From the NCBI GenBank assembly GCA_965112735.1, contig OZ218950.1:744001-808000 (forward strand): DNA of 64,000 nt, in the 5' to 3' direction. Positions 1 to 34,251 of this stretch are shown piece after piece (position 1 is the stretch's first letter; each line of letters starts with the position of its first letter). Below the pieces are notes generated by a model, which saw nothing but the letters and a program-made list of their open reading frames with translations, was not told where the DNA came from and did not search any database. The DNA is from Phaeosaccion multiseriatum (taxonomy: Eukaryota > Protista > Ochrophyta, other classes). Position numbers and translations under genes: made by a program.

Positions 1-872
1 AGCAGGGCCCTCCACACGCACGCACGCTCGCAGCGCCTTCCGTCCGCGACTCTTCTTCTCACTCGCCGTCACCATGCTCTCCTCCAGCACCGCCCACTCC
101 TCCTTCAGCTTGTCGCCATCATCATCCTTCCCTACTTCTCCTGAGCGATAGCGGCGGTAGGCAGACACAAAGCCTCGGATCGTGCTCTCCAGGCTCGCCC
201 CCTTCCTCTTTGTGCGCACAGCGAGGTGGGGCAGCAGCAACACTTTACTCCGCTCCACAGCCACCACCACGCCATTCGATAGCTCCCTGCCCCGACGGCC
301 GCAGAAGGCCGTGGCAGCATCAGCCCCGCCATCTTCCAGCCCTCTCCACAGGCCACAGGGCAGTTGAATCTCGTCCCCGACATGAAGCCCCAGCCCCGCA
401 AGCAAACCCACCCCATTCCCATCCTCCAGTGCCTCCTTCCTCTCCTCCCCTCCCCCAGGCATTGAAGGGGCGCATTTTGCCCTCTTCCTTCCTCTCCCAT
501 TGATGTCCTCCGCAGCTCCTCGCTTGGGCACAGGCGTACAACGGGCAATCTCCTCCTTCTGCTCCGCTCCCTCCCTCTTCACTCGTGCATGCCTCAGGCA
601 CATCCCATCTAGCTTCCGTTGCTTTTCGCACCCCTCAACAGTACACCTCTTCCGTACCACCACCGCTCCGTGAGCCAGGCAAAGTCCTCCTCGGACCCCT
701 ACCTTATCGCACCCCTCAACAGTACACCTCTTCCGTACCACCACAGCTCCATGGGCCTGGCAAAGTCCTCCTTGGACCCGCTGCTTGTCGCACCCCTCAA
801 CAGTACACCTCTTAACGACAGCTCCATGGGCCAGGCAAAGTCCTCCCTGTTGCGACTGCTTCTCGCACCCCT

Positions 873-3686
873 GCACAAGGCCGCGGCGAGGCTCAGCACA
901 AAGAGCAGAGACGGCCACCTCCCTCCCACACACGAGACCTTTCGACGCCTCCAGCAAGCGCACGTCGACGAGAGCCTCGAAGAGATCAACACAGCAGCAA
1001 CAGCAGCCAGGGAGTACGCCAGAACCCAGGTGCAGGAGCACCCCGAGAATGGCAACGACGTCACCAGAGAGGAGATCAGCACAGCCATGCTGCTGACCTA
1101 CCGGAGGGTCAACTACTGGAAGGGCCAAGGAGCAGACGGGCGCAGGGCGAGCCACGTCAAGTACCCCCCGGACAGCCCCCAGGAGTACGCAATCGTGGAG
1201 GCTCTGACTGACACCTACGAGCTGCTCCGAACGGGGGACACTCCACTGCCTCCACAGCTCGCCAAACGGTGGTTCAGCACCAGCGCCGCAGCCCTCGGCG
1301 AGAAAGCGCGTCCTGTGACATCCCCCAACCTCTACCGCAGCCTCGTGGAGAGCTGTCACATGAAGCTCATCGCGGACAGGGTGGGCCCAGAGCTCAGAAG
1401 CGCAGGACAGCTAGCGGTAGCGGTCAGAGGCGGAGGGGAAACACACGCCGCAGCAGCCCAGCTAGCGCACGATGCCGGCAAAACCGTCGTGCTGCATGAC
1501 ATCACCAAGGCCTACACCCGCGTGTCGCGTGCCAGAGGCGTCCTTGCCTCAGGCGCACTCCCTACCATCGACCCAGCAGGCATCAACTACGCCATCGCCA
1601 GCCTCTCCCACGCCTCCGCCCACAACGCCCTCACACCAGACGGCACCCAGACCATCCACCAGAGCTCCGGAGTCAACCAAGGAGCACCAGAAGGGCCTCT
1701 CATGTTCGCAGCCGCCATCCACCCAGTGCTGAAAGTTCAGAACACAGCCGACACCGCAGCGAACCGCCCCACCATCTCCGCCTACGCAGACGACCTCATG
1801 GACCAGCTGGAACCCGACGCACCCCTACAGACCTACGCCCCACGCCATGCCCATCTCCAAGCCCAATTCCGAGGCTTGGGCCTCGAGTTCAACGAGAGGA
1901 AAACGGTTTACCTCATGGGCAAAGGCAAGCAGCCAACACAGGCTGACAGGGACCACGCCCAACGGCAGGGCGCCACACTTGCCACCGAGGGTACCGTGGT
2001 AGCCGGCATCCCCGTCGGCACGGAGGAGTACATCGAAGAGTACCTCCGCAACATCCTCGGCCAAGAAGACCCCAGGGGCTACCTCCAACTCGCCAAACAC
2101 TGCAGCGAGTGGGACAACACCCAGGCGGCCACCCTCGTCCTCCTCCAATGCCTCCCAGCCAGGCTCACACACCTGGCGAGAGCCATTGACCCCTCCATCT
2201 TCCGACGCGCCCTCGGCAGCAGGGCAGACCGCACCAACAGGGCGACACTGGCCCACATCATGCGCCTCCCCGATGCCCCCCTCTGGAGCAGGCCGCAGAT
2301 GCACAAGAGGAGCCATGGACGGAGACACAGCGCCTACAAATGCATACGGCACGGCGCTTCGGCGGCCTCGGCCTCACCAGCCTCCACGACATCGCCCCAG
2401 CAGCATACCTTGGCAACAAGATGCTCACCCTCCCCCCCCTGCTCAGCCGCACCGCACGCCGGGACGGCTCCCAAGAGAGCGCCCTACCGGACCAGCTGTT
2501 CACCAACGGAGCCCTCAAGAGCGTCGCCGACAGCGTCAACCTCCTGCACGAGGAGGGGGTCCCTGAGGCCCCCCTCATCCAAGCAGTGGGTCAGGCACAG
2601 TTCGACGAGGCCCGCTCACGCGTACTCGAGCCGCCTGACCACCAAGCCCAAGACACAGCGCGACGCAACGTGCGCAGGAGCCATCAGGCAGGCCGTCAAC
2701 CGACCCACGGCGTCCAGAAGGCCCTCACCACCTTCATCCACAAACGCCGCCATGAGGAGCTGACGCAGAGCATCGCCACCATCGACGTCACACCGGCAGA
2801 GGCACAGAGGGGAGAGGAGACACAGGAAATGGCAACAGCCCGACTCCACTCACAGCGAGGAAGGGGCGCCATGGCCTTCCTCGGAGCGCTCCCCCACGGC
2901 CACAACACCATGGCCCCCGCAGAATGGACCATGGCCCTTCGTCGCAACCTCGGTGTCAACACGCCATACGCGGACCCGCCCCCACCCTGCCTCGGCACAG
3001 GCTGCGCCCGCACGGCAAGCACCACCCACGCCACCATCTGCCCCCGCACCGGCCTCCACAACCACACACACCACCTCCTCGTCAAGGCCTTCGGGAGGAT
3101 GATGCACAGCGTGGGCATTGGAGGAGCACGTGTAGAGGACCAGACCTGCTTCGACGGCCCCACGGGCACCCGCGCAGGCCGCGACCTACGCATGGATCTG
3201 ACCTATCCCGCAGGTAGCTTCCCGGGAGCGGACGCACCCCTGCGGAGAAACCTCCTCTGCGACATCACCGTCACCAACCCCACCGCCCCCACCCACGTGG
3301 GACGGGCCTCCACCACGCCAGGCCACGCAGCAGCCGCCGCCGAAGAGCGCAAGCGCATTCACTACCTGGGCAGTTTTCTGCCCGGGACTTCAACCCTGAA
3401 GTGCATTGCAATCGAGACGTACGGCAGACTGGGCCACCAAACGGACGAGCTCATCGAGGCGATGGCCATCCACAAGGCATCAAGAGGGCTCGGCCCCGCA
3501 GCGGCGGCAGCCACGGGCCCCATCAAGGGCCTCCTGCGCCAACAACTGTCCCTCGCCCTTCAACGCGCCCTCTCACAGCGGGAGATCAGGTATGGCACCC
3601 TCCTTCGAGCCACGATGACGCAGCACGAAGCAGCAGAAACCCTCGACTGGGGGCTCATGGGAGTCATCGACGGAGCGGCCGCCTGA
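873..3686 (+). CDS. Partial reverse transcriptase + CCHC knuckle + restriction-like endonuclease of copy A, one frameshift at ~2276-2281
   Basis: Motifs QLAVAVRGGGE, HDITKAY, GVNQGAPEGPLMF, YADD (1783-1794), GGLGL, C-x4-C-x7-H-x3-C and RMDL...DITV...AEERKR.HY...ETYG. A C6 run here is C7 in copy C. Confidence 0.9.
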
Positions 3687-4009
3687 GGAGCAGGAGTACA
3701 CCAGCCAGCAGACAGCGAGACCATCAGCACACAGCATAGCAACCACAGTTAGTCACGCCTTGTCACCCGCACCACCCACAGTAGGATAGTTCACATATCA
3801 CCTCCACCACCTCACTCCTTCCCACACCCCTTCATCTCCTCCTCCCCCCCTCACTCCCTTCCCATTCCCCATTATCCTCTACTCTACCACCCTTACCATC
3901 CTCTTCCCCTCCACATCACGCTCCATCAATACCACACATACACGCATCTACACATGGTTACAACTTACCTCGAGCGCTCCAATACTGAGCCCATAAGCTC
4001 TAATATACA
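873..4009 (+). mobile_element. 5'-truncated CRE-clade (RLE) non-LTR retrotransposon, copy A
   Basis: About 99% identical by eye to 29971-33107. Flanked by the direct repeat TCTCGCACCCCT (861-872 and 4010-4021), with CCT microhomology at the 5' junction. Ends TAATATACA. Confidence 0.95.
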
Positions 4010-4327
4010 TCTCGCACCCCTCAACCGTACACCTCTTCACCACAGCTCCATGGGCCAGGCAAAGTCCTCCCTGTTGCGACTGCTTATCGCACCCCTCAAC
4101 AGTACACCTCTTCCGTACCACCACAGCTCCATGGCCCTGGCAAAGTCCTCCTTGGATCCGCTGCTTGTCGCACCCCTCAACAGTACACCCCTTCACCACA
4201 GCCCCGTGGGCCAGGCAAAGTCCTCCCTGTTGCGACTGCTTCTCGCACCCCTCAACAGTACACCTCTTCACCACAGCTCCGTGGGCCTGGCAAAGTCCTC
4301 CCTGTCGCGACTGCTTCTCGCACCCCT

Positions 4328-4495
4328 CTCCCCCCTTCACTCCCTTCCCATTCCCCATTATCCTCTACTCTACCACCCTTACCATCCTCTTCCCCTCCAC
4401 CTCACGCTCCATCAATACCACACATACACGCATCTACACATGGTTACAACTTACCTCGAGCGCTCCAATACTGAGCCCATAAGCTCTAATATACA
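4328..4495 (+). mobile_element. 168-bp 3'-terminal fragment of the same retrotransposon, copy B
   Basis: Matches ~3842-4009 and has the same TAATATACA end. TSD TCTCGCACCCCT at 4316-4327 and 4496-4507. Confidence 0.93.
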
Positions 4496-5052
4496 TCTCG
4501 CACCCCTCAACAGTACATCTCTTCCGCATTCTCACAACTCCGCGCCCTTCAAACAATCCTCCTTGCACCTCCTTCGCGTTTCTTCAAAAGCATATAAGCC
4601 CTCCCCCGTGGACAAGAAGGCTCTTACAGCCCTTCCTTCACTGTCTGTCGTGGTCAAGAGGAGAGAGAGAAGTCGAATGTTTGTGTGCCAACTTGAAGGC
4701 CTCCAAGCCCGCGCATCGACTGAAGACCAAAGGAGGATAGATCCCCTTGCGTCCAGCCCAAGCGGTTTTGGACAAGAAGAGGACAGAAGGTTGTAAAAGA
4801 GAATATTCAAGACAGGGATGTGAGGGGAATACACTTCTTAGGGAGGAGAGGGAGAAAAAGAAGGAAGTGTGAAGGCCGGGGCCCAGGAACATGCGATCTA
4901 GTTTCAGTTTCAGCATAGTGGATCTGGACGAGGAGCCCAGCTCGGAGTCCCAGCGCAAACACTCCCCGAGGGATTCTTGGGGCTTTACGAGGCCCAAAGA
5001 CTGAGGACGATACAACGCTTGCCTTGTGTCAAGAACAAGAGCTTCCTCACGA

Positions 5053-5970
5053 CTACTCTTCCGGCTGCCCATCTGCTGCTATTGCCGCTGTATCACCAAC
5101 TGCTGTGTCACCACCACTGGCGAGGGCGGCCTTGTGATCATGGAGGTGTATAACGGCCTTCCCGTCGTCCACGTGTCCCTTCATCAGGCAAATTACCTCC
5201 CCATGCGGCCACGTGTTGCTCAGACCGGCCGCCAGCTGGGGCAGGATGGGATGGCAGTGGATGGGGATGGAGGGGGGGGGGGGGCAAAGGGGAAATAAAG
5301 GGGGGCGGGGGGGGAGGGGCGAAGGAGAGAGAGAGTGAGTGCTTTAACTTCGAGGTGGAAGAGAAGGACATGGAGGGAGAGACAGAGTTATCCCTCCATC
5401 ATACAACTGCCGACGGCTTAACGCTAAGCAGCTGGTGATACATGACATATGCTTAGCAGTTGGTGATACATTACATGCGCTAACATGAGTCTACCCAGGC
5501 TTAAGAAAGACTACCTCGCCAAGCAAGGAAGGAGCGCAGCGCGGCCCCGCACGGCCGTACTTCTCGCGGGCCATCCACTGCCATCCCCCTCCTCCTCCTC
5601 CTCCTCCTCCTCCTCCTCCTCCTCCTCCTCCTCCTCCTCCTCCTCCTCCTCCTCCTCCTCCTCCTCCTCCTCCTCCTCCTCCTCCTCCTCCTCCTCCTCC
5701 TCCTCCTCCTCCCACTGCCTCTCTACCCCTCCTCCTACGGCTCCTGCTGCTGCTAGTACTACCCCATTCGCCACCGATAGACGTGGATGTCCGGTTGGCT
5801 TTCAAGGCTGCCTGCCGCCTTCAAACCCCCTCCTCCTTTCTTGCTGGGCTGTTTCTGACTGCGGTAGATGGCAGCCGATGTGCGCACAAGCACCTGGAGC
5901 CATTGGTGCTCCAATAGGTGTGCTTCAGAGAACTCCGCGAGGGTCTGAATGGCTTTTGGGCAGCCTCGCC
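5053..5970 (-). pseudogene. Internally deleted, degraded copy of the 3' exons of the large EF-hand/ARM-like gene (unit 1)
   Basis: Homologous to 34252-34850 joined directly to 36310-36570 across a (CCT)n run. Confidence 0.75.
5588..5712. repeat. (CCT)n microsatellite at the deletion junction of unit 1
   Basis: Directly visible. Confidence 0.95.
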
Positions 5971-6020
5971 GTATGGAGGGAGGGAGGGATGGAGGGGGGA
6001 GGAGGAGGAGCGAGGAGGAG

Positions 6021-6960
6021 GGGGGAAATGTTGGAAGTGGCGGATTGCTATTGGGGATGTTGGAAGGCCTCAGATTAGATGGTCCATAAGTCAATGGCCC
6101 AGGCCCAGGCAGATACGGTGAGAACGGGTGGCGTAGCTCTCACTATCCAATGTGCGTAGATGGTCGTTTAGGACGAGCATGCGATAAGCTGTTAGAGGCA
6201 AGGCTGGCTGCTAGGCTGGCTTTGGGGTTGCTGTTACCTTGTCCGTGTGTCTAGTTCCATCCTATCTGTAGGCGACAGCGCATGTCGTTTTACACGACGG
6301 GGAGGTCGGGGTAGGGCGGGAGCCGGAGCTGGCGCGGATAGTGAAGATGAGGTGGCGTAAGGCCAGCCACAGGGCAGCCACTCCGGCGCGAGTACTGTGT
6401 ACGTTGGGCTGTACGGGAGGGCGGCAGTTATCAGACGTGGGAGGCACCAGTGGGACGATTGGCTCTTGCGGCGCGGAGAGAGGGCGGCAATAGAGGCATT
6501 CGAGGACTCTTTGGCGCCAGGGGCGTTGGACCCGGGAGTACAGCGCAAGCGTGGGCAGCGGTCTAAGCGAGAGCGCACCGTGCGCGCCATGTTGCACGAG
6601 AAGTGGGGGATGGGCATCGCTGCGGAGACGGCGCAACATTTGGGGTTCTAGACCGTGAGGTGGTGGTCGAGGAGGGGGGATAGGTATAGGGGATGTTGGA
6701 AGGTCACGGGATAGGCATTGGTGGGGATGTTGGAAGGTCACGGGATAGGCATTGGGGATTTTGGAAGGCCTCAGATGAGATGGGCCGTGATTTCAATGGT
6801 CGGTGTGTCCTATATTACGTTGATTCTGAGTGGCAACCAACGGGCCGCTCAGTGTAGGTAAACTTGGTAAGGAGAGCCTAGCTGCAGGGCTTGCAAACGG
6901 CTTCCATCCCGGCTAATAAACCGAGTGTTACCAATTGTCGACTCAAGTCGCTTTTACGAA
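6021..6960. other. Segment unique to the U1/U2 boundary, with short direct repeats; origin unknown
   Basis: No counterpart in the other units. GGGGAT(G/T)TTGGAAGG occurs at ~6053, 6689, 6723 and 6753. Bounded by (GGA)n runs. Confidence 0.6.
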
Positions 6961-7474: not shown

Positions 7475-8614
7475 CTAAATCCCAAGTCCCGAGGTATCAG
7501 CAGCAGGGCCCTCCACACGCACGCACGCTCGCAGCGCCTTCCGTCCGCGACTCTTCTTCTCACTCGCCGTCACCATGCTTTCTTCCAGCACCGCCCACTC
7601 CTCCTTCAGCTTGTCGCCATCATCATCCTCCCCTACTTCTCCTGAGCGATAGCGGCGGTAGGCAGACACAAAGCCTCGGATGGTGCTCTCCAGGCTCGCC
7701 CCCTTCCTCTTTGTGCGCACAGCGAGGTGGGGCAGCAGCAACACTTTACTCGGGCCCACAGCCACCACCACGCCATTCGATAGCTCCCTGTCCCGACGGC
7801 CGCAGAAGGCCGTGACAGCATCAGCCCCGCCATCTTCCAGCCCTCTCCACAGGCCACAGGGCAGTTGAATCTCGTCCCCGACATGAAGCCCCAGCCCCGC
7901 AAGCAAACCCACCCCATTCCCATCCTCCAGTGCCTCCTTCCTCTCCTCCCCTCCCCCAGCCATTGAAGGGGCGCATTTCGCCCTCTTCCTTCCTCTCCCA
8001 TTGATGTCCGTCGCAGCTCCTCGCTTGGGCACAGGCGTACAACGAGCAATCTCCTCCTTCTGCTCCGCTCCCTCCCTCTTCACTCGTGCATGCCTCTTGC
8101 ACATTCCCCCTTGCTTCCGTTGCTTTTCGCACCCCTCAACAGTACACCTCTTCCGTACCACCACCGCTCCGTGAGCCACGCAAAGTCCTCCTCGGACCCG
8201 TACCTTATCGCACCCCTCAACAGTACACCTCTTCCGCACAGCTCCATGGGCCTGGCAAAGTCCTCCCTGTTTCGACTGCTTGTCGCACCCCTCAACAGTA
8301 CACCTCTTCACCACAGCTCCATGGGCCTGGCAAAGTCCTCCTTGGACCCGTACCTTATCGCACCCCTCAACAGTACACCTCTTCACCACAGCTCCATGGC
8401 CCTGGCAAAGTCCTCCTTGGATTCGCTGCTTGTCGCACCCCTCAACAGTACACCCCTTCACCACAGCCCCGTGGGCCACGCAAAGTCCTCCCTGTTGCGA
8501 ATGCTTCTCGCACCCCTCCACAGTACACCCCTTCACCACAGCCCCGTGGGCCAGGCAAAGTCCTCCCTGTCGCGACTGCTTCTCGCACCCCTCAACAGTA
8601 CATCTCTTCCGCAT
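7475..8614 (-). CDS. Zinc-finger repeat protein copy 2 (7 WRKY19-like/GCK fingers + ~200 aa C-terminal region), 379 aa
   Basis: Intact ORF from the ATG at 8614 (the ORF track uses an upstream GTG at 8653). Repeats read CTVEGC(E/D)KxxxxGGLCxxHGAV; a basic NLS-like KR-x10-RKRAK follows. Confidence 0.88.
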   Translation of the reverse strand: MRKRCTVEGCEKQSRQGGLCLAHGAVVKGCTVEGCEKHSQQGGLCVAHGAVVKGCTVEGCDKQRIQGGLCQGHGAVVKRCTVEGCDKVRVQGGLCQAHGAVVKRCTVEGCDKQSKQGGLCQAHGAVRKRCTVEGCDKVRVRGGLCVAHGAVVVRKRCTVEGCEKQRKQGGMCKRHARVKREGAEQKEEIARCTPVPKRGAATDINGRGRKRAKCAPSMAGGGEERKEALEDGNGVGLLAGLGLHVGDEIQLPCGLWRGLEDGGADAVTAFCGRRDRELSNGVVVAVGPSKVLLLPHLAVRTKRKGASLESTIRGFVSAYRRYRSGEVGEDDDGDKLKEEWAVLEESMVTASEKKSRGRKALRACVRVEGPAADTSGLGI

Positions 8615-9062
8615 TCTCACAACTCCGCGCCCTTCAAACAATCCTCCTTGCACCTCCTTCGCGTTTCTTCAAAAGAATACAAGTGCTCCCCCGTGGACAA
8701 GAAGGCTCTTACAGCCCTTCCTTCACTGTCTGTCGTGGTCAAGAGAAGAGAGAGAAGTCGAATGCTTATGTGCCAAGTTGAAGGCCTCCAACCCGCGCAT
8801 CGGCTGAAGACAAAGGAGGATAGATCCCCTTGCGTCCAGCCCAAGTCTTGGAGAAGAGGAGGAGAGAAGGTTGTAAAAGAGGGTAATCAAAAGAGGGAAG
8901 AGAGGGGAATATATTTCTTAAGGGATGGGAGGGAGAGAAACAAAAAACAAAACGAAGGCGCTGTATATTTTTCAATTTACAGCTTATTGGCTCTGGACGA
9001 GGAGCCAGCTCGGAGTCCCACAGAGCTCCCCCCGGCAAACACTCTCCGAGGGGTTTGGGGCT

Positions 9063-9898: not shown

Positions 9899-9940
<42 letters not shown>

Positions 9941-12795
9941 AGACGACGCATGCCCCATGATTTGCATGACATGCATAGATTCATTTAGGTTAGGGGTACA
10001 GCAGCAAGAATACTCATGAGGGGAGAAGTAAGGTTCCTCCCTCCCTCCCTCCCTCCCTCTCTCCCTCCCTCCCTCCCTCTCTCCCTCCCTCCCTCCCTCC
10101 CCTCCCTCCCCTCCCCTCCCCCCTCCCTCCCTCCCTCCCTCCCTCCCTCTCCCTCTCTCTCTCTCACCTCGTCTCTATCCCTAAGCTCGTCCACCACATA
10201 GAGCCTGCTTGCGAGGAAGCACTCCTTGGCCACACTCGGGTCCAAGCGGTCGGGGCCGATGCATGCGTGGGCGAGTAAGCTGTGCAGCAGGTGGTGATAC
10301 AGCAGTCACAGAACACGCACGACACCAACGTTCAGCATTCCATTCGATCCAATCATTCCGAAGCAGGGCGAAGCAAGCAAGTGGGCAGGGCAGAGTAGCG
10401 ATGAGCGGCAGGGGGGATTCAGAGCGGCTCTTTCACAGCTTTCACAGCACATTGACAGTGTCAGAGCCTCAGACTGCTCGACCGAAATGGTCTTGAGACA
10501 AGCGGTCGCCTAAGGGTTTGAGTTTGAGTTTAAAGGAGGGAAGCGAAGCGGACACTGACACTGGCCGCTGGACATGACATGAACACTGACACTGGCAGGC
10601 AACTGCCCCGGCCATTCCACTGGCACTGGGTCCTGGCACTGGCCAAGGCACTGACACTGGACACTGACCTGCCCCAGTCCGTGAGTGAGAAGCGCTGCAG
10701 CACCTTTTTCACCACGCCGCGCCGCCGCCGGTCCATCTTCAGAGATAAATTGTTGATAGGGTACACCTGTTGGTCATTCGCCATTCGGTTAGTCATTTGT
10801 TGGCTGGCTGGTTGGTCCTTCGGTTGGTGATTCGGGTGGTCGCTTGTTTGTCTTTCGGGGTAAGCAAGTCGGCCTTGTACGGAGGACGCCACAGGATACA
10901 CACACACACCCATTGACTCACTACCCACCCACCTACTGACTTGCTACATACCTTCCAGAGCGCCTCGACGAGTCCTCCGTGCTCTCTCATCACCTTGTCC
11001 ACCCCCCGTGTGTATAGCCTCGCCTCTCGGTAGGCGTCATGGTCGGCCTTTGCGCTGACGGGAAGGCGCTCCTCCATGCAACACAGCAGAGCTCGCAGGC
11101 CCTGCAGAAGGCTGCTTTGGCTCTGACTCTGGCTTGAGGGAGGGAGGCTGGAGCTGCTGCATTTGTTGTTGTTGTTGTTGTTGTTGTTGGAGGTTACGAT
11201 TCCTCCCTCTCCTCCTCCTCCTCCTCCCACTGCCTCTTCCCCTCCTTCTACGGCTGCTGCTGCTGCTACTACCCCATTCGCCACCGACGTAGACGTGGAT
11301 GTCCGCTTGGCTTTCAAAGCTGCCGCCTTCAAACCCCCTCCTCCTTTCTTGCTGGGCTGTTTCTGACTGCGGTAGATGGCAGCCGATGTGCGCACGAGCA
11401 CCTCGAGCCATTGGTGCTCCAAGAGGTGGGCTTCAGAGAACTCCGCGAGGGTCTGAATGTCTTGGGTAGCCTCGCCGTCCTGGAGGGAGGGAGGGATGGA
11501 GGGGGCAGGAGGAGGAGGAGGAGGAGGAGGAGGAGGAATGCGCGTGTAGAAGTGAGAGATTGGCGTTCGTGCGTGCGTGCGTGCGTGCGTGCGTGCGTGG
11601 GTCCTGACCTTGTTCATGACTGCGATGAAGACTCTCTCGAGCTCATTGGCAAGCTGCTTGGGGGCCTCGGGACACACACACTGCGTGAACAGCAGGAACT
11701 GGGGGGGGTATGGCAGTGGATGGGGAGGAGGAGCAGCAGGAGGAGGAGCAGCAGTTGGTTATAGAGCAGAGTGGAAACATGCATCCCCTTCCCTTCCTTC
11801 CTTCCATCCTTCCTTCCTTCCTTCCTTCCTTCCTTTCTTTCTTCTGTCACTTGCTCCCGACCATTTGATGTGCTCCCATCCACTGCCATCCCTCCCCCTG
11901 TCCACCCCTCTCCCTCCCTCCCTCCCTCACTCTCTCCCCACCCTTCCTTCTCCCTCACCTGCTCGCGACTCAATTGATATGCCCCGGACACCGGCTCGCC
12001 CGTAGTGCCCCCTAAGCTCACAAAGTGATCAAAGGTACTTAATATCATCTTGAACGAAGCCCTCAGCACCCCCTCCACCTCCATGGACTCCTCCTCCACG
12101 GTTGCCTCTCCACTCGAGACGCGCTTGTTGCCCGACGCCACGAACCTCCACCACCGATCGTGCATCAACACCCGGGACCAGGTCACTGTGAAACGGTGGG
12201 CCATGACCCCGTCGGCTCGGTTATACACGTCACCCGCGCCTCTCTTGCACCCTCCTCCTCCTCCTCCTCCTCCTGCTGCTGCTGCTGCTGCTTGTGCTGC
12301 TGCTGCTGCTGCTTGTGCTGTTGTATCGCCAACTGCAGCATCACTAGGTGCCCCTCTGGAGGTGATGCTGTTGCTGGAGGAGTTCTGAGCCGTGGCCTTG
12401 CGTTCCAAACCCTTCCCAGGGGGCCCTCTTACGCCGCCGTTTGTGACACTAGGACCACTGCAAGTAGTGGTCACGTTGTTGTTCGTGCTCGTGTTGGTGA
12501 TACTCCCACGCCGCAGCAGACCCCATGTGCCATCACTACCCGCCCCTGCTCGTCCGTACATGAGGCCATCCAAGGCCAGCTCCCATGGTCTGTTTGGGTC
12601 TCCTCCTCCTGCGATACCCAAGCCGCCCCCCCCCACTGCTTCGAGACCGCTCCTGGGAGGGGGGTGAACTTCAATCGGCCGTCTCTCTTCCCAGGGGGGC
12701 ACGACAAAGCCGACGAAGGGGCAGGGAGGGGGGCGTGGCGCTCCCTCCCCACTCTCTCTACTGTCTCTCTTGTTGTGATGAGAGGAAGTCAGAGT
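9063..12795 (-). pseudogene. Duplicated 3' exons of the large gene (unit 2), lacking the 5' part
   Basis: Same exon peptides and GT-AG sites as 34252-37860 (e.g. [31 protein letters not shown]). An insertion near 9158 shifts the last exon. Confidence 0.8.
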
Positions 12796-13342
12796 GATAG
12801 AAGGAGCGCAGCGCGGCCCCGCACGTACTTCCCGCGGGCCATCCGCTGCCATCTCCCTCCCCCTCCTCCTCCCCCTCCTCCCCCGCCCCTGTGTCCATGG
12901 TCTATCCCCCCTCAGCAACGCCCACACGGGCGAGGGATTCGAATGAACAACAGCGGGTCTATGGATGGTTCAGGGATTAGTGGCAGCTCCTCGCACTCTC
13001 AGGAGGATGCTGGTGCCGGGCCCGTGCTGGGCGGTGCTGACTCGGAGTGAGCCCCTACCTCGCGCGAACGAAATCTTGAGCCCTCATTTACACTCTTGTT
13101 TGTAAAGAAACTCACCACTGCACGTGGAAAAACATCAAAATTCACACACAGCACATTCAGAAGCCCCCAAGTCACAGTTACTCGGCCCCTTCCACAGCAG
13201 TGAAGCGATGTGGGTGGCGACTGTTTTCATCAAGGTCCATCACGTGTATTGACTTACTCCACTCTTCACACCCACTGTACGAACCAAGCCTCAAGCTTCA
13301 CCACGGCGAAGGCGGTGAGGCGGACAGAAGGCCATCGGCTCA

Positions 13343-14557: not shown

Positions 14558-15084
14558 TCTCACAACTCCGCGCCCTTCAAACAATCCTCCTTGCACCTCC
14601 TTCGCGTTTCTTCAAAAGAATACAAGTGCTCCCCCGTGGACAAGAAGGCTCTTACAGCCCTTCCTTCACTGTCTGTCGTGGTCAAGAGAAGAGAGAGAAG
14701 TCGAATGCTTATGTGCCAAGTTCAAGGCCTCCAACCCGCGCATCGGCTGAAGACAAAGGAGGATAGATCCCCTTGCGTCCAGCCCAAGTCTTGGAGAAGA
14801 GGAGGAGAGAAGGTTGTAAAAGAGGATAATCAAAAGAGGGAAGAGAGGGGAAAATATTTCTTAAGGGATGGGAGGGAGAGAAACAAAAAACAAAATGAAG
14901 GCCGGGCCCAATTTTTATTTTTTTTTCAATTTCAGCGTTTTGGATCTGGACGAGGAGCCCAGCTCGGAGTCCCACAGAGCTCCCCCCCGCAAACACTCTC
15001 CGAGGGGTTCGGGGCTTTACGAGGCCCAAAGACTGAGGACGATACAACGCTTGCCTTGTGTCAAGAACAAGAGCTTCCTCACAA

Positions 15085-15814: not shown

Positions 15815-15870
<56 letters not shown>

Positions 15871-17532: not shown

Positions 17533-17576
<44 letters not shown>

Positions 17577-19166: not shown

Positions 19167-19337
19167 TCTCAGTTACTCGGCCCCTTCCACAGCAGTGAAG
19201 CGATGTGGGTGGCGACTGTTTTCATCAAGGTCCATCACGTGTATTGACTTACTCTACTCTTCACACCCACTGTACGAAACAAGCCTCAAGCTTCACCACG
19301 GCGAAGGCGATACGGCGGACGGAAGGCCATCGGGTCA

Positions 19338-20477: not shown

Positions 20478-20995
20478 TCTCACAACTCCGCGCCCTTCAA
20501 ACAATCCTCCTTGCACCTCCTTCGCGTTTCTTCAAAAGAATACAAGTGCTCCCCCGTGGACAAGAAGGCTCTTACAGCCCTTCCTTCACTGTCTGTCGTG
20601 GTCAAGAGAAGAGAGAGAAGTCGAATGCTTATGTGCCAAGTTCAAGGCCTCCAACCCGCGCATCGGCTGAAGACAAAGGAGGATAGATCCCCTTGCGTCC
20701 AGCCCAAGTCTTGGAGAAGAGGAGGAGAGAAGGTTGTAAAAGAGGATAATCAAAAGAGGGAAGAGAGGGGAAAATATTTCTTAAGGGATGGGAGGGAGAG
20801 AAACAAAAAAAAATGAAAGGCGCTTTATATTTTTCAATTTCAGCGTATTGGATCTGGACGAGGAGCCCAGCTCGGAGTCCCACAGAGGACCCCCTGCAAA
20901 CACTCTCCCCCCGAGGGGTTCGGGGCTTTACGAGGCCCAAAGACTGAGGACGATACAACGCTCGCCTTGTGTCAAGAACAAGAGCTTCCTCACGA

Positions 20996-21832: not shown

Positions 21833-21908
<76 letters not shown>

Positions 21909-23580: not shown

Positions 23581-23616
<36 letters not shown>

Positions 23617-24925: not shown

Positions 24926-26362
24926 AGAAGGAGCGCAGCGCGGCCCCGCACGTACTTCCCGCGGGCCATCCGCTGCCATCTCCCTCCCCCTCCTCCTCCC
25001 CCTCCTCCCCCGCCCCTTTGTCCATGGTCTATCCCCCCTCAGCAACGCCCACACGTGCGAGGGATTCGGATGAGCAACAGCGTGTCTATGGATGACTCAG
25101 GGATTAGTGGCAGCTCCTCTCACTCTCAGGAGGATGCTGGTGCCGGGCCCGTGCTGGGCGGTGCTGACTCGGAGTGAACCCCTACCTCGCGCGAACGAAA
25201 TCTTGAGCCCCCATTTACACTCTTGTTTGTAAAGAAACTCACCACTGCACGTGGAAATACATGAAAATTCACACACACCACGTTCATAAGCCCCCAAGTC
25301 ACCGTTACTCGGCCCCTTCCACAGCAGTGAAGCGATGTGGGTGGCGACTGTTTTCATCAAGGTCCATCACGTGTATTGACTTACTCTACTCTTCACACCC
25401 ACTGTACGAAACAAGCCCCAAGCTTCACCACGGCGAAGGCGATACGGCGGACGGAAGGCCATCGGGTCACTAAATCCCAAGTCCCGAGGTATCAGCAGCA
25501 GGGCCCTCCACACGCACGCACGCTCGCAGCGCCTTCCGTCCGCGCCTCTTCTTCTCACTCGCCGTCACCATACTCTCCTCCAGCACCGCCCACTCCTCCT
25601 TCAGCTTGTCGTCATCATCATCCTCCCCTGCTCCTCCTGAGCGATAGCGGTGGTAGGCAGACACAAAGCCTCGGATCGTGCTCTCCAGGCTCGCCCCCTT
25701 CCTCTTTGTGCGCACAGCGAGGTGGGGCAGCAGCAACACTTTACTCCGGCCCACAGCAACCACCACGCCATTCGATAGCTCCCTGCCCCGACGGCCGCAG
25801 AAGGCCGTGGCAGCATCAGCCCCGCCATCTTCCAGCCCTCTCCACAGGCCACAGGGTAGTTGAATCTCGTCCCCGACATGAAGCCCCAGCCCCGCAGGAA
25901 AACCCACCCCATTCCCATCCTCCAGTGCCTCCTTCCTCTCCTCCCCTCCCCCAGGCATTGAAGGGGCGCATTTCGCCCTCTTGCTTCCTCTCCCATTGAT
26001 GTCCTCCGCAGCTCCTCGCTTGGGCACAGGCGCACACCGGGCAATCTCCTCCTTCTGCTCCGCTCCCTCCCTCTTCACTCGTGCATGCCTCTGGCACATC
26101 CCACCTTGCTTCGGATACTTATCACACCCCTCAACAGTACACTTCTTCCGTACCATCACAGCTCCGTGCTCAAGGCAAAGTCCCCCCTGCTTCGGTTGCT
26201 TGCCGCACCCCTCAACAGTACACCTCTTCCTCACAGCCCCGTGGGCCACGCAAAGTCCTCCCTGTTTCGACTGCTTCTCGCACCCCTCAACAGTACACCT
26301 CTTGGTCACGGCTCCGTGGGCCAGGCAAAGTCCTCCTTGCTTCCGATGCTTGTCACACCCCT

Positions 26363-29300
26363 AGCACCCCCCTTCTTTTTTTCTGCTTAAGACAGGGCCA
26401 CCATGGAAGGGGACGACAGGGGGGCCACGCGGCCCCCCGGAGCCCAGGAGACACCAGCAAACCTCACAGCAACCCAGCAGGAGCCACCTATGAGCCGCGA
26501 TCAGCAGCGGCTCGAAAGAAGGGAGAGACGGGCAGCGGCAGCAGCAATTCGCCAAACACCAGCACGGGAAGGCGTGCCCACCCCCATCACGGCTCCACCA
26601 GCGGCCGCAGCACCCCGCAACACCCTCCCGCAGGACCCACAGCTCCCACCAGCACTCACGGAACCCACAGCAACAGCAGCGGAAGCCCACCCCCAGCAGC
26701 AGCAACCACAACCGATCTCAACGACACGGCAACAAACAGCACCAGCCGCCAGGAGATCTACCACGCCCGCCAGCGAGACAACAGGCCCTACAACAGCACC
26801 ACCCCCCACAGCGACCAGCCCAGCACCCATGCAGCCAACCACGAGGCCAAGGGGACGAAGCAGGACCCCCCGAGCACGCAGCCCGGAAAGGCCAACCGCC
26901 ACTTTCCGAGCCTCAGATCCAGCCCAAACCACCAACGCGTCAACTCACAGAAACGCACACGGGATCACAGAGCAAATCGTCTCCATCCTCCAAGACGAAT
27001 ACGAAGACACCCACCTCACAGCCACGACCCCCATACGGCAACACCCGAACCTCTTCTTCAACGAACAAGCGCCAGCATCCGCCAGCCGACGCATCAGCGC
27101 TGAGTTCGCAAGCCTAAACCTCACCGCGACGGAACTGACCCACCACAACACGGCCGAGGCCATCGCCGACCTCGTACGACCACCCCCCACGACGCACGAG
27201 GAAGAGACAGCATCACTCGAAACAGACACGCATGGACACGCACCAACGACATGGAGCAACACCATACGCCACCAGCGCGACGCGGCGCTCCCGCCTACCA
27301 ACTCGCACTTCTATATGCCCCTCCTCAGACAAGCTCTAAGGAGCGGAGGCCCCCCCACCACCCCCGGAAGACCACATGGGGGAGGAGATTACCCCCTTGG
27401 ATGGCAACAGATCGTAGAGGCCTATGCCCACACGCTCGCAGGCCAAGAGATCACCTCCAACGAGTTGGTCAACGACTACATCACCGCCTCACGACAGGAG
27501 GAACTCATCGCGGTATTACCCGACGTCCAAGCCATCGTTGAGCGCTACGGCCACGCCCTACGCGACCACACCAACAACACCACCACCTCCCCCTTCGCCA
27601 ACACCATGGCCACACCGTGGTGGGCGCCGGGGCAAGCCCTCGCCTTACGCACGAGGCAGGCCCCCCGGGGAACCGCACCAGGACCGCCACCACCCCCCGC
27701 CCAAAGCGACGCAACCACACCCAGCCCACCAACACCGGAGGACAACCCCACCAACGCCCGAGTGTACCGAAGACACCCCGACAATGGAAACATTCAAGGG
27801 GGCATCCTCTGCAACTTTGGCGAATGCCACGACACTTTCGTCACGGTAGGCAACACCAGAGACCGCCTCATCAGGCACCAGTCGAGCCACCACCCGAACC
27901 GCGGCAGAGAGTGGGACCGATGGATGCGCGAACACCACCCCCAGGCCGCGTCAATCCTGTGGTACCGCACCAACGGCCCACAGAGCGGACCACAGAATAA
28001 TACGTACCAGCTCCGGGACTGCACAAGTGGATGCGGCAACCTGGCCCACCGAAACTCCGGCAGATCCTTCCTTACCCGCTTCCCGCAATCAGGCCTACGA
28101 CAACCCCTATGCAACGCCTGCATACGAGCACACGAAGCCGCAAGCCTACCAGCACCACCAACCATCCAACGAGCTCGAAGCATGCCCCCACCGACAAGAG
28201 CAGGTGGGACAGACACTACACGAGAGCACGACCAGGAGGGAGGAGGGAGAGGAGAGCGAACGGGACACAGGGCAGGGGGACGAGGAGACCGCGAAGGAAG
28301 AGTAGTAGCAGGGGGGGAAGAGGGCGAACACAGCAGAGGCGGAGGAGAGCGCCCAGCACTGGCACGGGAAGCAGCGGCAGAAGGAGGGGAAGGGCAAGCA
28401 GCGGGAGGAGGTGACGAAGGAGAAGGAGGAGGCGACCCCACCAACAACGAGGAGCTACCCAACTGCCCGGTGTGTATGGAACCGCTCACTGGCCAAGCAC
28501 AAGTCGCCATGCACGAAGACGAACATCACGTGCACAACCACTGCGCATTGGGAGTCATGAGCAGGTACCCCAACCGCAACGACCACCTCTGCCCCTACTG
28601 CCGCAACCCCTGCTACCGGCACACGATCGAGCAGGCCATCACAGCACAAGGAGGGAGAGCTATGGGCCGCGCAAGGGATCGCCTAGCGAGGGAGCGCAGA
28701 GAGTCGCATCAGCAGCACGCGCAGGCCAGCCAAGGGCGACGCCGCCAGTCCCAGCCACCCCCCACCACCCGACACACACCCCCACCCCAACCTACCGCCC
28801 CCCCAGCCCCGATATGCTGCATATGCATGTCAGACGCGGACCCCCCTTTCATCGCACCAACCACGGAGTGGCCAGTACGCACCCGACGCTGCCAACACAC
28901 CGTTCACCCCGCGTGCCTCCTTCACCACCTGAACGACCAAGCCACACTGAGGAGAGCCAACCAGCAGCCCGTCATACCACCAGGCAACCTCCCCTGCCCC
29001 GCGCAAGGCTGCATGGCTGGCTACCAAGCTCAACGAGCCATCCCCGCCCTCAGGACCATCCTCACCCAAGGCAACGCAGCATCGGCCTACCAAGGCCCCC
29101 TCAACGACCTCGAGAACGCCTATCTAGGCCCAGACCCAAACGAGGACCCGTCGCGTACGGCAACGCCCCAGCACACGACAGCAACGGCCAGGCTCAACCC
29201 GTACCAACCCACCACCCCCACGGGCAGAGGAGGAGGGCGAGGGCACGCGGAAGAAGGAGGAGGAGGAGGAGGAGGCGCAATCGCAGCAGCGCCAAGTGGA

Positions 29301-32300
29301 GTAGAAGGAGGAAGAGGAGGACGAGGGAGGGGGAAGGAAACGGACAAGGAGCAGCAGCAGAGAGGGGACCTCAGAGAGAAAGGGCAGGGGGAGATAGCAC
29401 ACGCACGCAAGGAACCACAGCAGCAGCAGCGAGACGAGGGGGAGGAGGACGGAGCAGAGGCCAAGGAGGTAGCGGCGGGGACGGAGGGGACGGAGAAGGG
29501 CCAGCCAACGACGATACACCCGAGGAAGGATGGCCCATGCAGCACCCAAACGTCCTCCGCCTAGGGGCCCTGGACCCGCAGGGTACCATCCTCTCAACAC
29601 TCGTGTTTGAGACAGTAGCGCAGTGCAACCCCCGCCACGTCAGCTCGATTATCAGCTTACAGCAAAGAGCGCTCAACAACTGGAACAGGGCGCTGAGGGC
29701 CCACAAGAACGGCCCCACCGACGCCACCCTCCACACCCTTCTGGCATGGGATGTCTTCCACCACCTCCTCCCTGCCATGCTCTTCTCTAAAGACGGAGCC
29801 TACAGCCGCCAGCAGCGGATACAGATGGTCCTCGACCTCGACATCGCCCCACTCGCACAAGCAGCGATAGCCACAGCACACGCACGCCGCCCACCACCCC
29901 CAGCACAGGCACAGACAGAGGAGCGACGGAGAGAAACCTGCGCCCACCTGCTCACCAAACCCGGAGGCCTGCACAAGGCCGCCGCGAGGCTCAGCACAAA
30001 GAGCAGAGACGGCCACCTCCCTCCCACACACGAGACCTTTAGACGCCTCCAGCAAGCGCACGTCGACGAGAGCCTCGAAGAGATCAACACAGCAGCAGCA
30101 GCAGCCAGGGAGTACGCCAGAACCCAGGTGCAGGAGCACCCCGAGAATGGCAACGACGTCACCAGAGAGGAGATCAGCACAGCCATGCTGCTGACCTACC
30201 GGAGGGTCAACTTCTGGAAGGGCCAAGGAGCAGACGGGCGCAGGGCGAGCCACGTCAAGTACCCCCGGACAGCCCCCAGGAGTACGCAATCGTGGAGGCT
30301 CTGACTGACACCTACGAGCTGCTCCGAACGGGGGACACTCCACTGCCTCCACAGCTCGCCAAACGGTGGTTCAGCACCAGCGCCGCAGCCCTCGGCGAGA
30401 AAGCGCGTCCTGTGACATCCCCCAACCTCTACCGCAGCCTCGTGGAGAGCTGTCACATGAAGCTCATCGCGGACAGGGTGGGCCCAGAGCTCAGAAGCGC
30501 AGGACAGCTAGCGGTAGCGGTCAGAGGCGGAGGGGAAACACACGCCGCAGCAGCCCAGCTAGCGCACGATGCCGGCAAAACCGTCGTGCTGCATGACATC
30601 ACCAAGGCCTACACCCGCGTGTCGCGTGCCAGAGGCGTCCTAGCCTCAGGAGCACTCCCTACCATCGACCCAGCAGGCATCAACTACGCCATCGCCAGCC
30701 TCTCCCACGCCTCCGCCCACAACGCCCTCACACCAGACGGCACCCAGACCATCCACCAGAGCTCCGGAGTCAACCAAGGAGCACCAGAAGGGCCTCTCAT
30801 GTTCGCAGCCGCCATCCACCCAGTGCTGAAAGTTCAGAACACAGCCGACACCGCAGCGAACCGCCCCACCATCTCCGCCTACGCAGACGACCTCATGGAC
30901 CAGCTGGAACCCGACGCACCCCTAGAGACCTACGCCCCACGACATGCCCATCTCCAAGCCCAATTCCGAGGCTTGGGCCTCGAGTTCAACGAGAGGAAAA
31001 CGGTTTACCTCATGGGCAAAGGCAAGCAGCCAACACAGGCTGACAGGGACCACGCCCAACGGCAGGGCGCCACACTAGCCACCGAGGGTACCGTGGTAGC
31101 CGGCATCCCCGTCGGCACGGAGGAGTACATCGAAGAGTACCTCCGCAACATCCTCGGCCAAGAAGACCCCAGGGGCTACCTCCAACTCGCCAAACACTGC
31201 AGCGAGTGGGACAACACCCAGGCGGCCACCCTCGTCCTCCTCCAATGCCTCCCAGCCAGGCTCACACACCTGGCGAGAGCCATTGACCCCTCCATCTTCC
31301 GACGCGCCCTCGGCAGCAGGGCAGACCGCACCAACAGGGCGACACTGGCCCACATCATGCGACTCCCCGATGCCCCCCCTCTGGAGCAGGCCGCAGATGC
31401 ACAAGAGGAGCCATGGACGGAGACACAGCGCCTACAAATGCATACGGCACGGCGCTCCGGCGGCCTCGGCCTCACCAGCCTCCATGACATCGCCCCAGCA
31501 GCATACCTTGGCAACAAGATGCTCACCCTCCCCCCCCTGCTCAGCCGCACCGCACGCCGGGAAGGCTCCCAAGAGAGCGCCCTACCGGACCAGCTGTTCA
31601 CCAACGGAGCCCTCAAGAGCGTCGCCGACAGCGTCAACCTCCTGCACGAGGAGGGGGTCCCTGAGGCCCCCCTCATCCAAGCAGTGGGTCAGGCACAGTT
31701 CGACGAGGCCCGCTCACGCGTACTCGAGCCGCCTGACCACCAAGCCCAAGACACAGCGCGACGCAACGTGCGCAGGAGCCATCAGGCAGGCCGTCAACCG
31801 ACCCACGGCGTCCAGAAGGCCCTCACCACCTTCATCCACAAACGCCGCCATGAGGAGCTGACGCAGAGCATCGCCACCATCGACGTCACACCGGCAGAGG
31901 CACAGAGGGGAGAGGAGACACAGGAAATGGCAACAGCCCGACTCCACTCACAGCGAGGAAGGGGCGCCATGGCCTTCCTCGGAGCGCTCCCCCACGGCCA
32001 CAACACCATGGCCCCCGCAGAATGGACCATGGCCCTTCGTCGCAACCTCGGTGTCAACACGCCATACGCGGACCCGCCCCCACCCTGCCTCGGCACAGGC
32101 TGCGCCCGCACGGCAAGCACCACCCACGCCACCATCTGCCACCGCACCGGCCTCCACAACCACACACACCACCTCCTCGTCAAGGCCTTCGGGAGGATGA
32201 TGCACAGCGTGGGCATTGGAGGAGCACGCGTAGAGGACCAGACCTGCTTCGACGGCCCCACGGGCACCCGAGCAGGCCGAGACCTACGCATGGATCTGAC

Positions 32301-33107
32301 CTATCCCGCAGGTAGCTTCCCGGGAGCGGACGCACCCCTGCGGAGAAACCTCCTCTGCGACATCACCGTCACCAACCCCACCGCCCCCACCCACGTGGGA
32401 CGGGCCTCCACCACGCCAGGCCACGCAGCAGCCGCCGCCGAAGAGCGCAAGCGCACGCACTACCTGGGCAGTTTTCTGCCCGGGACTTCAACCCTCAAGT
32501 GCATTGCGATCGAGACGTACGGCAGACTGGGCCACCAAACGGACGAGCTCATCGAGGCGATGGCCATCCACAAGGCATCAAGAGGGCTCGGCCCCGCAGC
32601 GGCGGCAGCCACGGGCCCCATCAAGGGCCTCCTGCGCCAACAACTGTCCCTCGCCCTTCAACGCGCCCTCTCACAGCGGGAGATCAGGTATGGCACCCTC
32701 CTTCGAGCCACGATGACGCAGCACGAAGCAGCAGAAACCCTCGACTGGGGGCTCATGGGAGCCATCGACGGAGCGGCCGCCTGAGGAGCAGGAGTACACC
32801 AGCCAGCAGACAGCGAGACCATCAGCACACAGCATAGCAACCACAGTTAGTCACGCCTTGTCACCCGCACCACCCACAGTAGGATAGTTCACATATCACC
32901 TCCACCACCTCACTCCTTCCCACACCCCTTCATCTCCTCCTCCCCCCCTCACTCTCTTCCCATTCCCCATTATCCTCTACTCTACCACCCTTACCATCCT
33001 CTTCCCCTCCACATCACGCTCCATCAATACCACACATACACGCATCTACACATGGTTACAACTTACCTCGAGCGCACCAATACTGAGCCCATAAGCTCTA
33101 ATATACA
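26363..33107 (+). mobile_element. Apparently full-length (6745 bp) site-specific CRE-clade RLE non-LTR retrotransposon, copy C
   Basis: Flanks TGTCACACCCCT (26351-26362) and TGTCGCACCCCT (33108-33119). 40-nt 5' UTR, Kozak-like GCCACCATGG, long ORF, 323-nt C-rich 3' UTR, no LTRs, no poly(A). Confidence 0.95.
26403..32784 (+). CDS. Retrotransposon polyprotein (~2127 aa reconstructed): C2H2 finger, C4 cluster, two RING-like fingers, RT, CCHC knuckle, PD-(D/E)xK restriction-like endonuclease
   Basis: Three overlapping ORFs (26403-29564, 28472-30304, 30292-32784) join if one base is added in the G5 run 29329-29333 (inferred) and one in the C5 run 30262-30266 (C6 in copy A). YADD at 30880-30891; RLE motifs at ~32287-32523. 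Confidence 0.88.
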
Positions 33108-34251
33108 TGTCGCACCCCTCAACAGTACACCTCTTCACCACAGCTCCGTGGGCCAGGCAAAGTCCTCCTTGGACCCGCTGCTTGTCGCAACCCTCAACAG
33201 TACACCTCTTGGTCACAGCCCCATGCCCTTTGCAAAGTCCTCCGCGTTGCGACTCCTTCTCGCACCCCTCAACAGTACACCTCTTCCGTACCACCACAGC
33301 CCCGTGGCCCTTGCAAAGCCCTTCTCGGACCCGTTGCTTGTCGCACCCCTCAACAGTACACCTCTTCACCACAGCACCGTGGGCCTGGCAAAGTCTCCCT
33401 TGTTGCGACTGCTTGTCGCACCCCTCAACAGTACACCCCTTCACCACAGCCCCGTGGGCCAGGCAAAGTCCTCCTTGGATCCGCTGCTTGTCGCAGCCCT
33501 CAACAGTACACCTCTTCACCACAGCTCCGTGGGCATTGCAAAGTCCTCCTTGGATCCGCTGCTTCTTGCAACCCTCAACAGTACACCTCTTGGTCACAGC
33601 CCCATGCCCTTTGCAAAGACCTCCGCGTTGCGACTCCTTCTCGCACCCCTCAACAGTACACCTCTTCCGTACCACCACAGCTCCGTGCCCAAGGCAAAGT
33701 CCCCCCTGCTTCCGTTGCTTGCCGCACCCCTCCACGCTACATAAATACCGCCTATGCATGTTTACCTTGCACCTCCTTCGCGTTTCCTCAAAAGCATATA
33801 AGCCCTCCCCCGTGGACAAGACGGCTCTTAAGTTCTTCCTTCACTGTGTGTCGTGGTGAAGAGGAGAGAGAGAAGTCGAATGCTTATGTCGCATCGACTG
33901 AAGAGGATAGATCCCCTTGCGTCCAGCCCAAGTGGTCTTGGACACGAAGAGGACAGAAGGTTGTAAAAGAGAAGAATCAAAAGAGGGAAGAGAGGGGAAG
34001 ATGTTTCTTAGGGATGGGAGGGAGAGAAAAAAAAGGAGAAAGGGAGAAAGGGGGCTATACATCGGCAATCCAACCCTGGAACATACGATTTAGTTTCAGT
34101 TTCAGCTTATTGGATCTGGACGAGGAGCCCAGCTCGGAGTCCCACAGAGCTCCCCCCCGCAAACACTTGAGGGGTTCGGGGCTTGACGAGGCCCAAAGAC
34201 TGAGGACGATACAACGCTTGCCTTGTGTCAAGAACAAGAGCTTCCTCACAA

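Follow-up and report, generated by a model that had tools for sequence, protein, structure and literature searches.

We analyzed a 64,000-nucleotide stretch of the Phaeosaccion multiseriatum genome (contig OZ218950.1, positions 744,001 to 808,000 of the forward strand; hereafter the window, with positions counted from its first letter) in which three copies of a 6.7-kb retrotransposon lie inside tandemly arrayed zinc finger genes. Judged from sequence, it is very probable that this element is a young and probably active retrotransposon with a restriction-like endonuclease (RLE) that uses target-primed reverse transcription (TPRT) to integrate at one fixed position of a tandem gene family, the position that encodes CTVEGC(E/D)K. 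The element is a long interspersed nuclear element (LINE) of the RLE type. An earlier, sequence-only reading of the window had proposed a site-specific element that uses a homogenized multicopy coding repeat, and the junctions collected across the genome support a strictly site-specific, RLE-bearing retrotransposon that lacks long terminal repeats (non-LTR) and has such a target.

Insertions at one base of a finger repeat

On the host strand the insertion point reads TGT ACT GTT GAG GGG TGC GA(G/C) A^AG, that is CTVEGC(E/D)^K, and it encodes the stretch that is best conserved in a 25-residue Zf_WRKY19 finger, itself present 3 to 12 times per gene. When up to three mismatches to a 22-mer are allowed, the window holds exactly the 42 target sites that had been claimed for it. 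They form seven arrays, with spacings of 75 bp in 25 cases and 81 bp in nine, and all 42 lie on the + strand, which places the host genes on the - strand, with each element running antisense to them from a single base of the repeat, as the sequence-only reading had it.

The three copies start at different points of the element (3606, 6578 and 1 by BLAST against the long copy) and share the 3'-terminal 15-mer AAGCTCTAATATACA, which ends at 4009, 4495 and 33107 and has three matches in the window against none in 100 shuffles. Each copy lies between 12-bp target-site duplications (TSDs), identical on the two sides of copies 1 and 2 and differing by one mismatch in copy 3. These details match the sequence in every particular that had been claimed, and a BLAST search of the window with the long copy bears out that no further copy lies in the 64 kb, since it returned the same three copies and otherwise only GGA/TCC-type microsatellite matches at 71-76%. 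The copies and their borders are as follows.

861-872, + strand: 5' TSD of copy 1, tctcgcacccct, read directly
873-4009, + strand: copy 1, 5'-truncated from about element position 3606 (BLAST, 99.2% to the long copy)
4010-4021, + strand: 3' TSD of copy 1, tctcgcacccct, read directly
4316-4327, + strand: 5' TSD of copy 2, tctcgcacccct, read directly
4328-4495, + strand: copy 2, 168 nt, 3' untranslated region (UTR) only, element positions 6578-6745 (BLAST, 97.6%; 15-mer end)
4496-4507, + strand: 3' TSD of copy 2, tctcgcacccct, read directly
26351-26362, + strand: 5' TSD of copy 3, tgtcacacccct, one mismatch to 33108-33119
26363-26372, + strand: junction filler of copy 3, agcacccccc, 10 nt, resembling part of the target (12 full-length 5' junctions compared)
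26373-33107, + strand: full-length element body of copy 3 (sequence, BLAST, terminal-repeat check)
33108-33119, + strand: 3' TSD of copy 3, tgtcgcacccct, read directly

Copy 1 (873-4009) retains most of the second open reading frame (ORF2), with the reverse transcriptase (RT), the CCHC motif and the RLE, together with the 3' UTR; its BLAST alignment starts at 870, owing to a 3-nt microhomology (cct). Copy 3 spans 26363-33107 with its filler. In full-length copies a variable, CACCCC-like filler of this kind precedes the conserved 5' end, which corresponds to 26373 onward (ttcttttttt ctgcttaag).

The same junction recurs across the genome. The last 18 nt of the element have 94 exact matches in the 67-Mb assembly, spread over eight contigs, against none for the reversed control, and T[CG]TC[AG]CACCCCT follows directly after 62 of them. 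We read the flanks of 61 distinct 3' ends among the 94, and 53 lie in the target, 45 with an exact match and 8 with one or two mismatches. Among the other eight, one is shifted in register by one base and four open with 7-10 nt of target before running into another element or a rearrangement; the last three are taken up below. The same junction is thus found in about 90% of readable copies, with the antisense orientation fixed, and the prospect that most copies might have unrelated flanks, which would speak against site specificity, clearly fails.

Beyond the target, 45 of the 53 in-target flanks continue as finger repeat, and the other 8 enter unrelated sequence or a further element. In at least six of those 8 the 12-mer is followed immediately by another element, giving head-to-tail arrays with target-only spacers (for example, C8:2259405-2262562, with four 3' ends inside 2.3 kb). 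A full-length 5' end can directly adjoin the 12-mer of the previous copy, which indicates that occupied sites are re-used. In the region of C5:95240, an 18-nt 3'-end fragment, AATAAGCTCTAATATAAA, lies between two partial targets just after a longer copy and represents a template-switch product or else an insertion with extreme truncation.

The 34 resolved in-target copies include 7 of full length. They are truncated at 28 distinct 5' points and, when start and upstream flank are taken together, fall into 33 distinct combinations; so many different truncation points indicate independent insertions. Over the last 1.64 kb, 30 copies have a mean pairwise difference of 0.63%, and many have no private substitutions; a divergence of about 0.6% indicates a young family. 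In the DNA sequencing run X3, the summed contig depth climbs about tenfold from ORF1 at the 5' end to the 3' part, as expected of a family rich in 5'-truncated copies. The target copy on the 5' side measures 12 nt in 12 of the 34 copies and 11 nt in four, the rest being 4-9 nt or unresolved, and such lengths of up to 12 nt point to cuts 12 bp apart with imprecise 5' joining, as in R2.

When window positions 27401-33400 were compared with runs X6 and X7 (labeled as other organisms, B and C), short pieces identical to the element were found at a depth of 2-5, one of which spans the 3' junction (33079-33162). These matches could reflect a close relative or sample carry-over; X7 and X3 come from the same study.

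Reading frames and enzymes of the element

The 6.7-kb element ends without poly(A), and no terminal direct or inverted repeats, of the kind that bound LTR or terminal-inverted-repeat elements, were found in the full-length copy. Its sense strand contains only 10.5% T, so that long open frames in the wrong phase are expected and should not be over-read. The frames, domains and 3' end were placed as follows in copy 3.

26403-29564, + strand: ORF1, 1053 codons, open in copy 3 (ORF listing, Pfam)
27810-27893, + strand: C2H2-like module of ORF1 (motif coordinates)
28020-28121, + strand: Cys-rich module of ORF1 (motif coordinates)
28464-28601 and 28815-29012, + strand: two RING-like modules of ORF1 (zf-RING_2)
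29537-32784, + strand: ORF2, about 1080 codons, with an N-terminal extension ahead of the RT (ORF listing)
30493-31014, + strand: RT core (30.9 bits with Pfam RVT_1, whose cut-off is 29.6, in the 830-residue piece from 30292)
30592-30612, 30769-30795 and 30877-30891, + strand: RT motifs HDITKAY, QG and AYADD (alignment)
32086-32532, + strand: CCHC motif and RLE (alignment columns; R2 fold match)
32785-33107, + strand: 3' UTR, ending in aagctctaatataca (read directly)

The ATG of ORF2 (29537) overlaps the end of ORF1, whose stop codon is at 29562-29564, by 28 nt in the -1 frame. This overlap is identical in all seven full-length copies read on contig 1, and over the 301 nt that surround it 40 copies show 99-100% identity. 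In copy 3 the ORF2 frame breaks in a C-run near 30261 and resumes from 30292; one extra C at 30261 is present in the single X3 contig that covers the site, in four contigs of run X1 and in other copies. Broken frames were searched as separate pieces. Two copies on contig 8 (C8:1572695-1575184 and C8:1546930-1549416) have frames of 2172 and 2132 codons that run through the RT match, so that ORF1 and ORF2 form a single frame in some copies on that contig. About a quarter of the full-length RT matches (8 of 29) belong to a subfamily at about 94% protein identity. The two-ORF layout presumably resembles that of SLACS and CZAR.

The RING-like modules of ORF1 score 24-25 bits with zf-RING_2, below the Pfam cut-off of 27.3. 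A RING likewise lies upstream of the RT in P0156, a distant relative, and BLASTP of ORF1 against the N termini of the relatives gave no similarity except for a weak RING-to-RING match to this protein (E, 0.013).

The enzymatic part of ORF2 was examined in an alignment of 13 homologous sequences, the element and 12 relatives. The catalytic RT columns (D102, Q162/G163 and D199/D200) are invariant. Downstream of the RT, a CCHC motif (C599-x4-C-x7-H-x3-C616) leads into an RLE with residues H626, E648, RMD668, LLCD690IT, K720..Y724 and GRLG, and the C-x4-C-x7-H-x3-C pattern, H626, E648, D668 (RMD), D690 (LLDxT), K720..Y724 and G744 are invariant or nearly so across the alignment. This arrangement matches, except for one spacer, the published RLE signature C..C..H..C / RH / E / R-x-D / D-E (PMC12857005), and ORF2 also has counterparts of the RH and K..KY motifs of R2 (PMC4838377).

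An exhaustive HMMER search returned 869 homologues, with a top match at 34% identity across the RT and C terminus, and a profile of the 13 homologues matches L1 ORF2p and R2 at 2e-13 to 1e-12. The closest relatives are unnamed metagenome proteins and proteins from Closterium. A word-indexed search with the single protein found nothing; the same kind of search with the profile returned unnamed proteins, including two from Closterium, and a weak match to Tx1. The relatives are annotated at most as 'hypothetical protein, RVT_1' (Atlas), and three of them (P0001, P0003 and P0004) lie on single-copy contigs with short flanks.

An AlphaFold model built from the alignment (pLDDT, 79; pTM, 0.81) finds its best structural matches in R2 proteins (residues 41-812; Foldseek E, 1e-11; VIA Z, 15-17.1), with L1 ORF2p ranking after R2; among solved structures only R2 and L1 match. 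Exo_endo_phos had no match, even at E values up to 5, in ORF1, the N terminus of ORF2 or the RT piece. Pfam found neither a Myb domain nor a zinc finger in ORF2, including its N terminus (29537-30262), and Pfam scans of the element found no Ulp1 protease or RNase H.

The assignment to non-LTR retrotransposons is based on the RT type, the lack of terminal repeats, the common 3' end with 5' truncations and the TSDs. Within these, the element belongs to the RLE group by its CCHC motif and PD-(D/E)XK endonuclease, which lie C-terminal to the RT, and by the absence of an N-terminal apurinic-type endonuclease.

Host genes, competing explanations and a proposed mechanism

The host genes belong to Zf_WRKY19 (PF24906), a family with a 24-residue Cys/His finger, with Pfam E values of 1.4e-44 and 9.6e-19 for the two halves of the gene split by copy 3. 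Host arrays and frames of the window are as follows.

620-872, continuing at 4010-4327 and 4496-4520, - strand: Zf_WRKY19 array of the gene interrupted by copies 1 and 2 (target scan)
7475-8653, - strand: uninterrupted host frame, 392 codons, seven fingers and a 200-aa tail
13343-14596, - strand: uninterrupted host frame, 417 codons, eight fingers (PF24906 homologues in Phytophthora and Aphanomyces)
19341-20531, - strand: uninterrupted host frame, 397 codons
25470-26362, - strand: 3' half of the gene split by copy 3, three fingers and the tail (Zf_WRKY19, 9.6e-19, three stretches)
33108-33819, - strand: 5' half of the gene split by copy 3, nine fingers (Zf_WRKY19, 1.4e-44, nine stretches)

At 4500-26100 the host finger gene is part of a tandem unit of about 6 kb, and other long frames recur once per unit, such as one of 437 codons at 11614-12927 on the - strand. 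The genome holds at least 909 finger candidates on many contigs, of which at least 150 scored above the Pfam cut-off, and some of them lie in frames of 700-1100 codons. Across 25 in-register units, C1, C6, C16 and H19 are invariant, and the entropy at the first, second and third codon positions is 0.29, 0.26 and 0.49, so that third positions vary most. The first 24 nt of the repeat, which constitute the target, are almost invariant. The target variants of contig 1 and contig 8 show synonymous differences only (GTT/GTG and TGC/TGT), and both are used. Set against the 268 intact CTVEGC[DE]K sites of the genome, the 94 element ends mean that roughly a quarter are occupied.

Several observations weigh against active, site-specific integration into a protein-coding repeat. 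Constraint on the host tail is weak, with dN/dS values of 0.5-0.9 and one pair at 1.8. None of the runs listed as holding these sequences is on record as RNA, and those compared are Logan contigs of unclear type. The D668-D690 spacer measures 21 residues, compared with 12-14 in the published RLE motif (PMC12857005). Every full-length copy read has at least one break in the ORF1 or ORF2 frame, mostly in homopolymer runs; these one-base breaks lie at different places in different full-length copies and may be assembly errors, of the kind that long reads make in homopolymers, or real decay. Finally, about 3 of the 61 copies fall outside the target: one in a CA repeat (C13:1085877), one at a C-rich site (C2:3593387) and one, C12:3051606, that keeps only the first 5 nt of the target, TGTCG. 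The C13 copy is 219 nt long, and the (CA)n microsatellite that contains it resembles the TCACAC part of the target.

One alternative, which we consider unlikely, is that the target is effectively a tandem DNA repeat, made of decaying pseudogenes or a macrosatellite, so that the element would count among the ordinary LINEs that target repeats and its site would be coding only incidentally. The 6-kb tandem arrays, the dN/dS values of the non-finger tail, the fact that none of their transcripts was seen and the filling of roughly a quarter of the sites would all fit such a view. Several paralogues nevertheless retain uninterrupted frames of 392-417 codons, their zinc ligands are invariant while variation falls mostly at third codon positions, and the target differences between subfamilies are synonymous. 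Zf_WRKY19 is moreover a curated Pfam family with oomycete homologues, and its finger candidates extend over many contigs and into frames of up to 1100 codons, all of which argues against this view.

A second alternative, that a few old insertions were spread along with the tandem arrays by segmental duplication, unequal crossing-over or gene conversion rather than by site-specific integration, is largely refuted and appears very improbable. Duplicated copies do exist, as a pair of 3' ends recurs four times with a period of about 4.1 kb on contig 1 (680-693 kb), and the starts 5797, 6138 and 6265 are each seen two or more times. Given the spread of truncation points and flanks among the 34 copies, duplication explains a minority of them only, and the insertions occupy diverged target subfamilies on several contigs. 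In addition, the elements differ by 0.6%, whereas host paralogues differ by 3-6% at synonymous sites (in the window, dS is 0.03-0.06 for 9 of 10 pairs, with one pair nearly identical). Least probable of all is that integration is only loosely specific and that selection purged insertions outside a tolerant gene family, since the few off-target copies that might suggest this still have flanks that open like the target, with TC or TGTCG, the copies are too young for much purging, and selection cannot account for insertion at a single fixed phosphodiester bond of a 75-bp repeat with a uniform orientation and duplication length.

We therefore favor TPRT at a fixed site of the finger repeat, and the geometry of the junctions suggests how it might proceed. 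The RLE would first nick the host sense strand at GA(G/C)A^AG, and the freed 3' end would prime cDNA synthesis on the 3' UTR of the element. A second cut may then fall on the other, element-sense strand, 12 nt away, after ...CACCCCT, with imprecise joining at the 5' end. The filler of full-length copies looks like partial re-copying of the target, or it may stem from transcription begun in the upstream duplication. The head-to-tail arrays show that a half-site together with the 12-mer can be re-used. R2 is carried along on rRNA, but an element that lies antisense to its host gene cannot use the host transcript in this way, and it would be expected to have a promoter of its own. Persistence of the target may be due to protein-level selection on the zinc-ligand codons together with homogenization of the arrays, and the hundreds of sites in the family would buffer the cost of insertion.

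The idea of an in-frame, intron-like removal of the element from the host mRNA finds no support in a hand check of GT..AG pairs, which gave no consistent in-frame design. Host-strand pairs that use the duplicated target (window 26351-26400 and 33095-33119) leave +11 or +2 nt, and with a GTATAT...AAGCAG pair the remainder is +33 nt, including a TAG, in copy 3 and +24 nt in the contig-1 copy that ends at 713058.

Overall, the window has a G+C content of 60% and is rich in simple repeats, which include near-perfect and very long microsatellites: (GTGA)159 at 39748-40383, (GAG)129 at 51246-51633 and (GGGA)60 at 46811-47049. Short tandem duplications at 5423-5483 and 48841-48901 contain ...GGTGATAC.

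Comparison with known site-specific elements

R2 elements are the closest in fold. Their solved structures (8gh6, 9nl2, 9nl3 and 9dou) share with the element the order RT, linker, CCHC and PD-(D/E)XK endonuclease, and they are its best match from the RT to the C terminus (Z, 15-17; about 600 aligned residues), at a sequence identity of 14-16%. As further points of likeness, both are strictly specific for a multicopy gene, show 5' truncations and 5' junctions that vary, and have no poly(A). R2 inserts in the sense orientation, is cotranscribed with its target and is cut out by a ribozyme. In contrast to R2, which resides in an RNA gene, the element lies antisense to a protein gene; an Rfam search of 25800-33800 found no ribozyme or other family. 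Its flanks are finger-repeat DNA and not the 28S ribosomal DNA (rDNA) site of R2. Nor does it have the R2 layout, in which an N-terminal zinc finger and Myb domain are joined to the RT, as ORF2 lacks recognizable Myb and zinc finger domains and the zinc modules sit in the separate 1053-codon ORF1, where two are RING-like.

The element may belong to the CRE clade (CRE1/2, SLACS, CZAR, MoTeR, FoTeR and Cnl1), where the sequence-only reading had placed it. With that clade, which we compared by motif and target descriptions, the element shares an RLE and a tandem multicopy target. Classical members target spliced-leader genes and fungal ones telomeric repeats, unlike the element, for which every in-target copy is found in the Zf_WRKY19 repeat. 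Poly(A) tracts terminate SLACS and CRE, whose target duplications are much longer. Utopia and NeSL likewise combine an RLE with strict specificity for a multicopy gene. They differ from the element in that Utopia targets the gene for U2 small nuclear RNA (snRNA) and in that many of them carry the Ulp1 protease or RNase H domains that were sought in the element and not found. Utopia is known in stramenopiles, namely, oomycetes, where it disrupts most U2 copies and forms tandem arrays (PMC4640811).

It is conceivable, if somewhat doubtful, that the element and its metagenome and Closterium relatives, some with a RING upstream of the RT, constitute an RLE lineage outside the five named clades and that the element is the first strictly sequence-specific LINE with a site selected as protein. 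If so, selection on zinc-ligand codons holds its recognition site constant, in place of selection on RNA genes or simple repeats. On the current view, site-specific LINEs persist by homing to targets that are redundant, conserved and nonprotein. A codon repeat in a large protein family could serve as such a haven for a LINE as well, since amino acid constraint and array homogenization would keep hundreds of identical sites available. The element may also shape the evolution of finger number and gene content in the host family. Moreover, it would offer a natural pair of RLE and RT for which many recent insertions can be studied and the non-rDNA recognition site, of about 22 bp, is defined, which is relevant to groups that build R2-type enzymes for targeted DNA insertion.

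The nearest precedent comes from trypanosomes, whose ingi, RIME and L1Tc elements are of the apurinic-endonuclease type. In the RHS family, the 5' coding region holds a fixed ingi/RIME/L1Tc hot spot, with over half the members disrupted (PMC7563717), so that there, too, a non-LTR element occupies a fixed coding site of a large multigene family and makes pseudogenes. The site preference of those elements is only relative (PMC7563717, its reference 7). The earlier claim that this class of target had no described example is an overstatement. Published lists of LINE targets comprise rRNA, tRNA and snRNA genes, spliced-leader exons, microsatellites, telomeric repeats and transposons and do not include protein-coding repeats (PMC4640811, PMC5035012; Kojima and colleagues), and no report of a LINE in Zf_WRKY19 or in other finger repeats turned up in our full-text literature search; the RHS hot spot, on the other hand, is a precedent that the claim had overlooked. 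Unlike the RHS case, in which the site is present once per gene, the element is of the RLE type, is on target in about 90% of copies and uses a codon repeat that recurs 3 to 12 times per gene. Compared with RHS, it is new in the kind of element, in its strictness and in its target, an intragenic codon repeat, and it would provide a second, clear case beside the looser trypanosome example.

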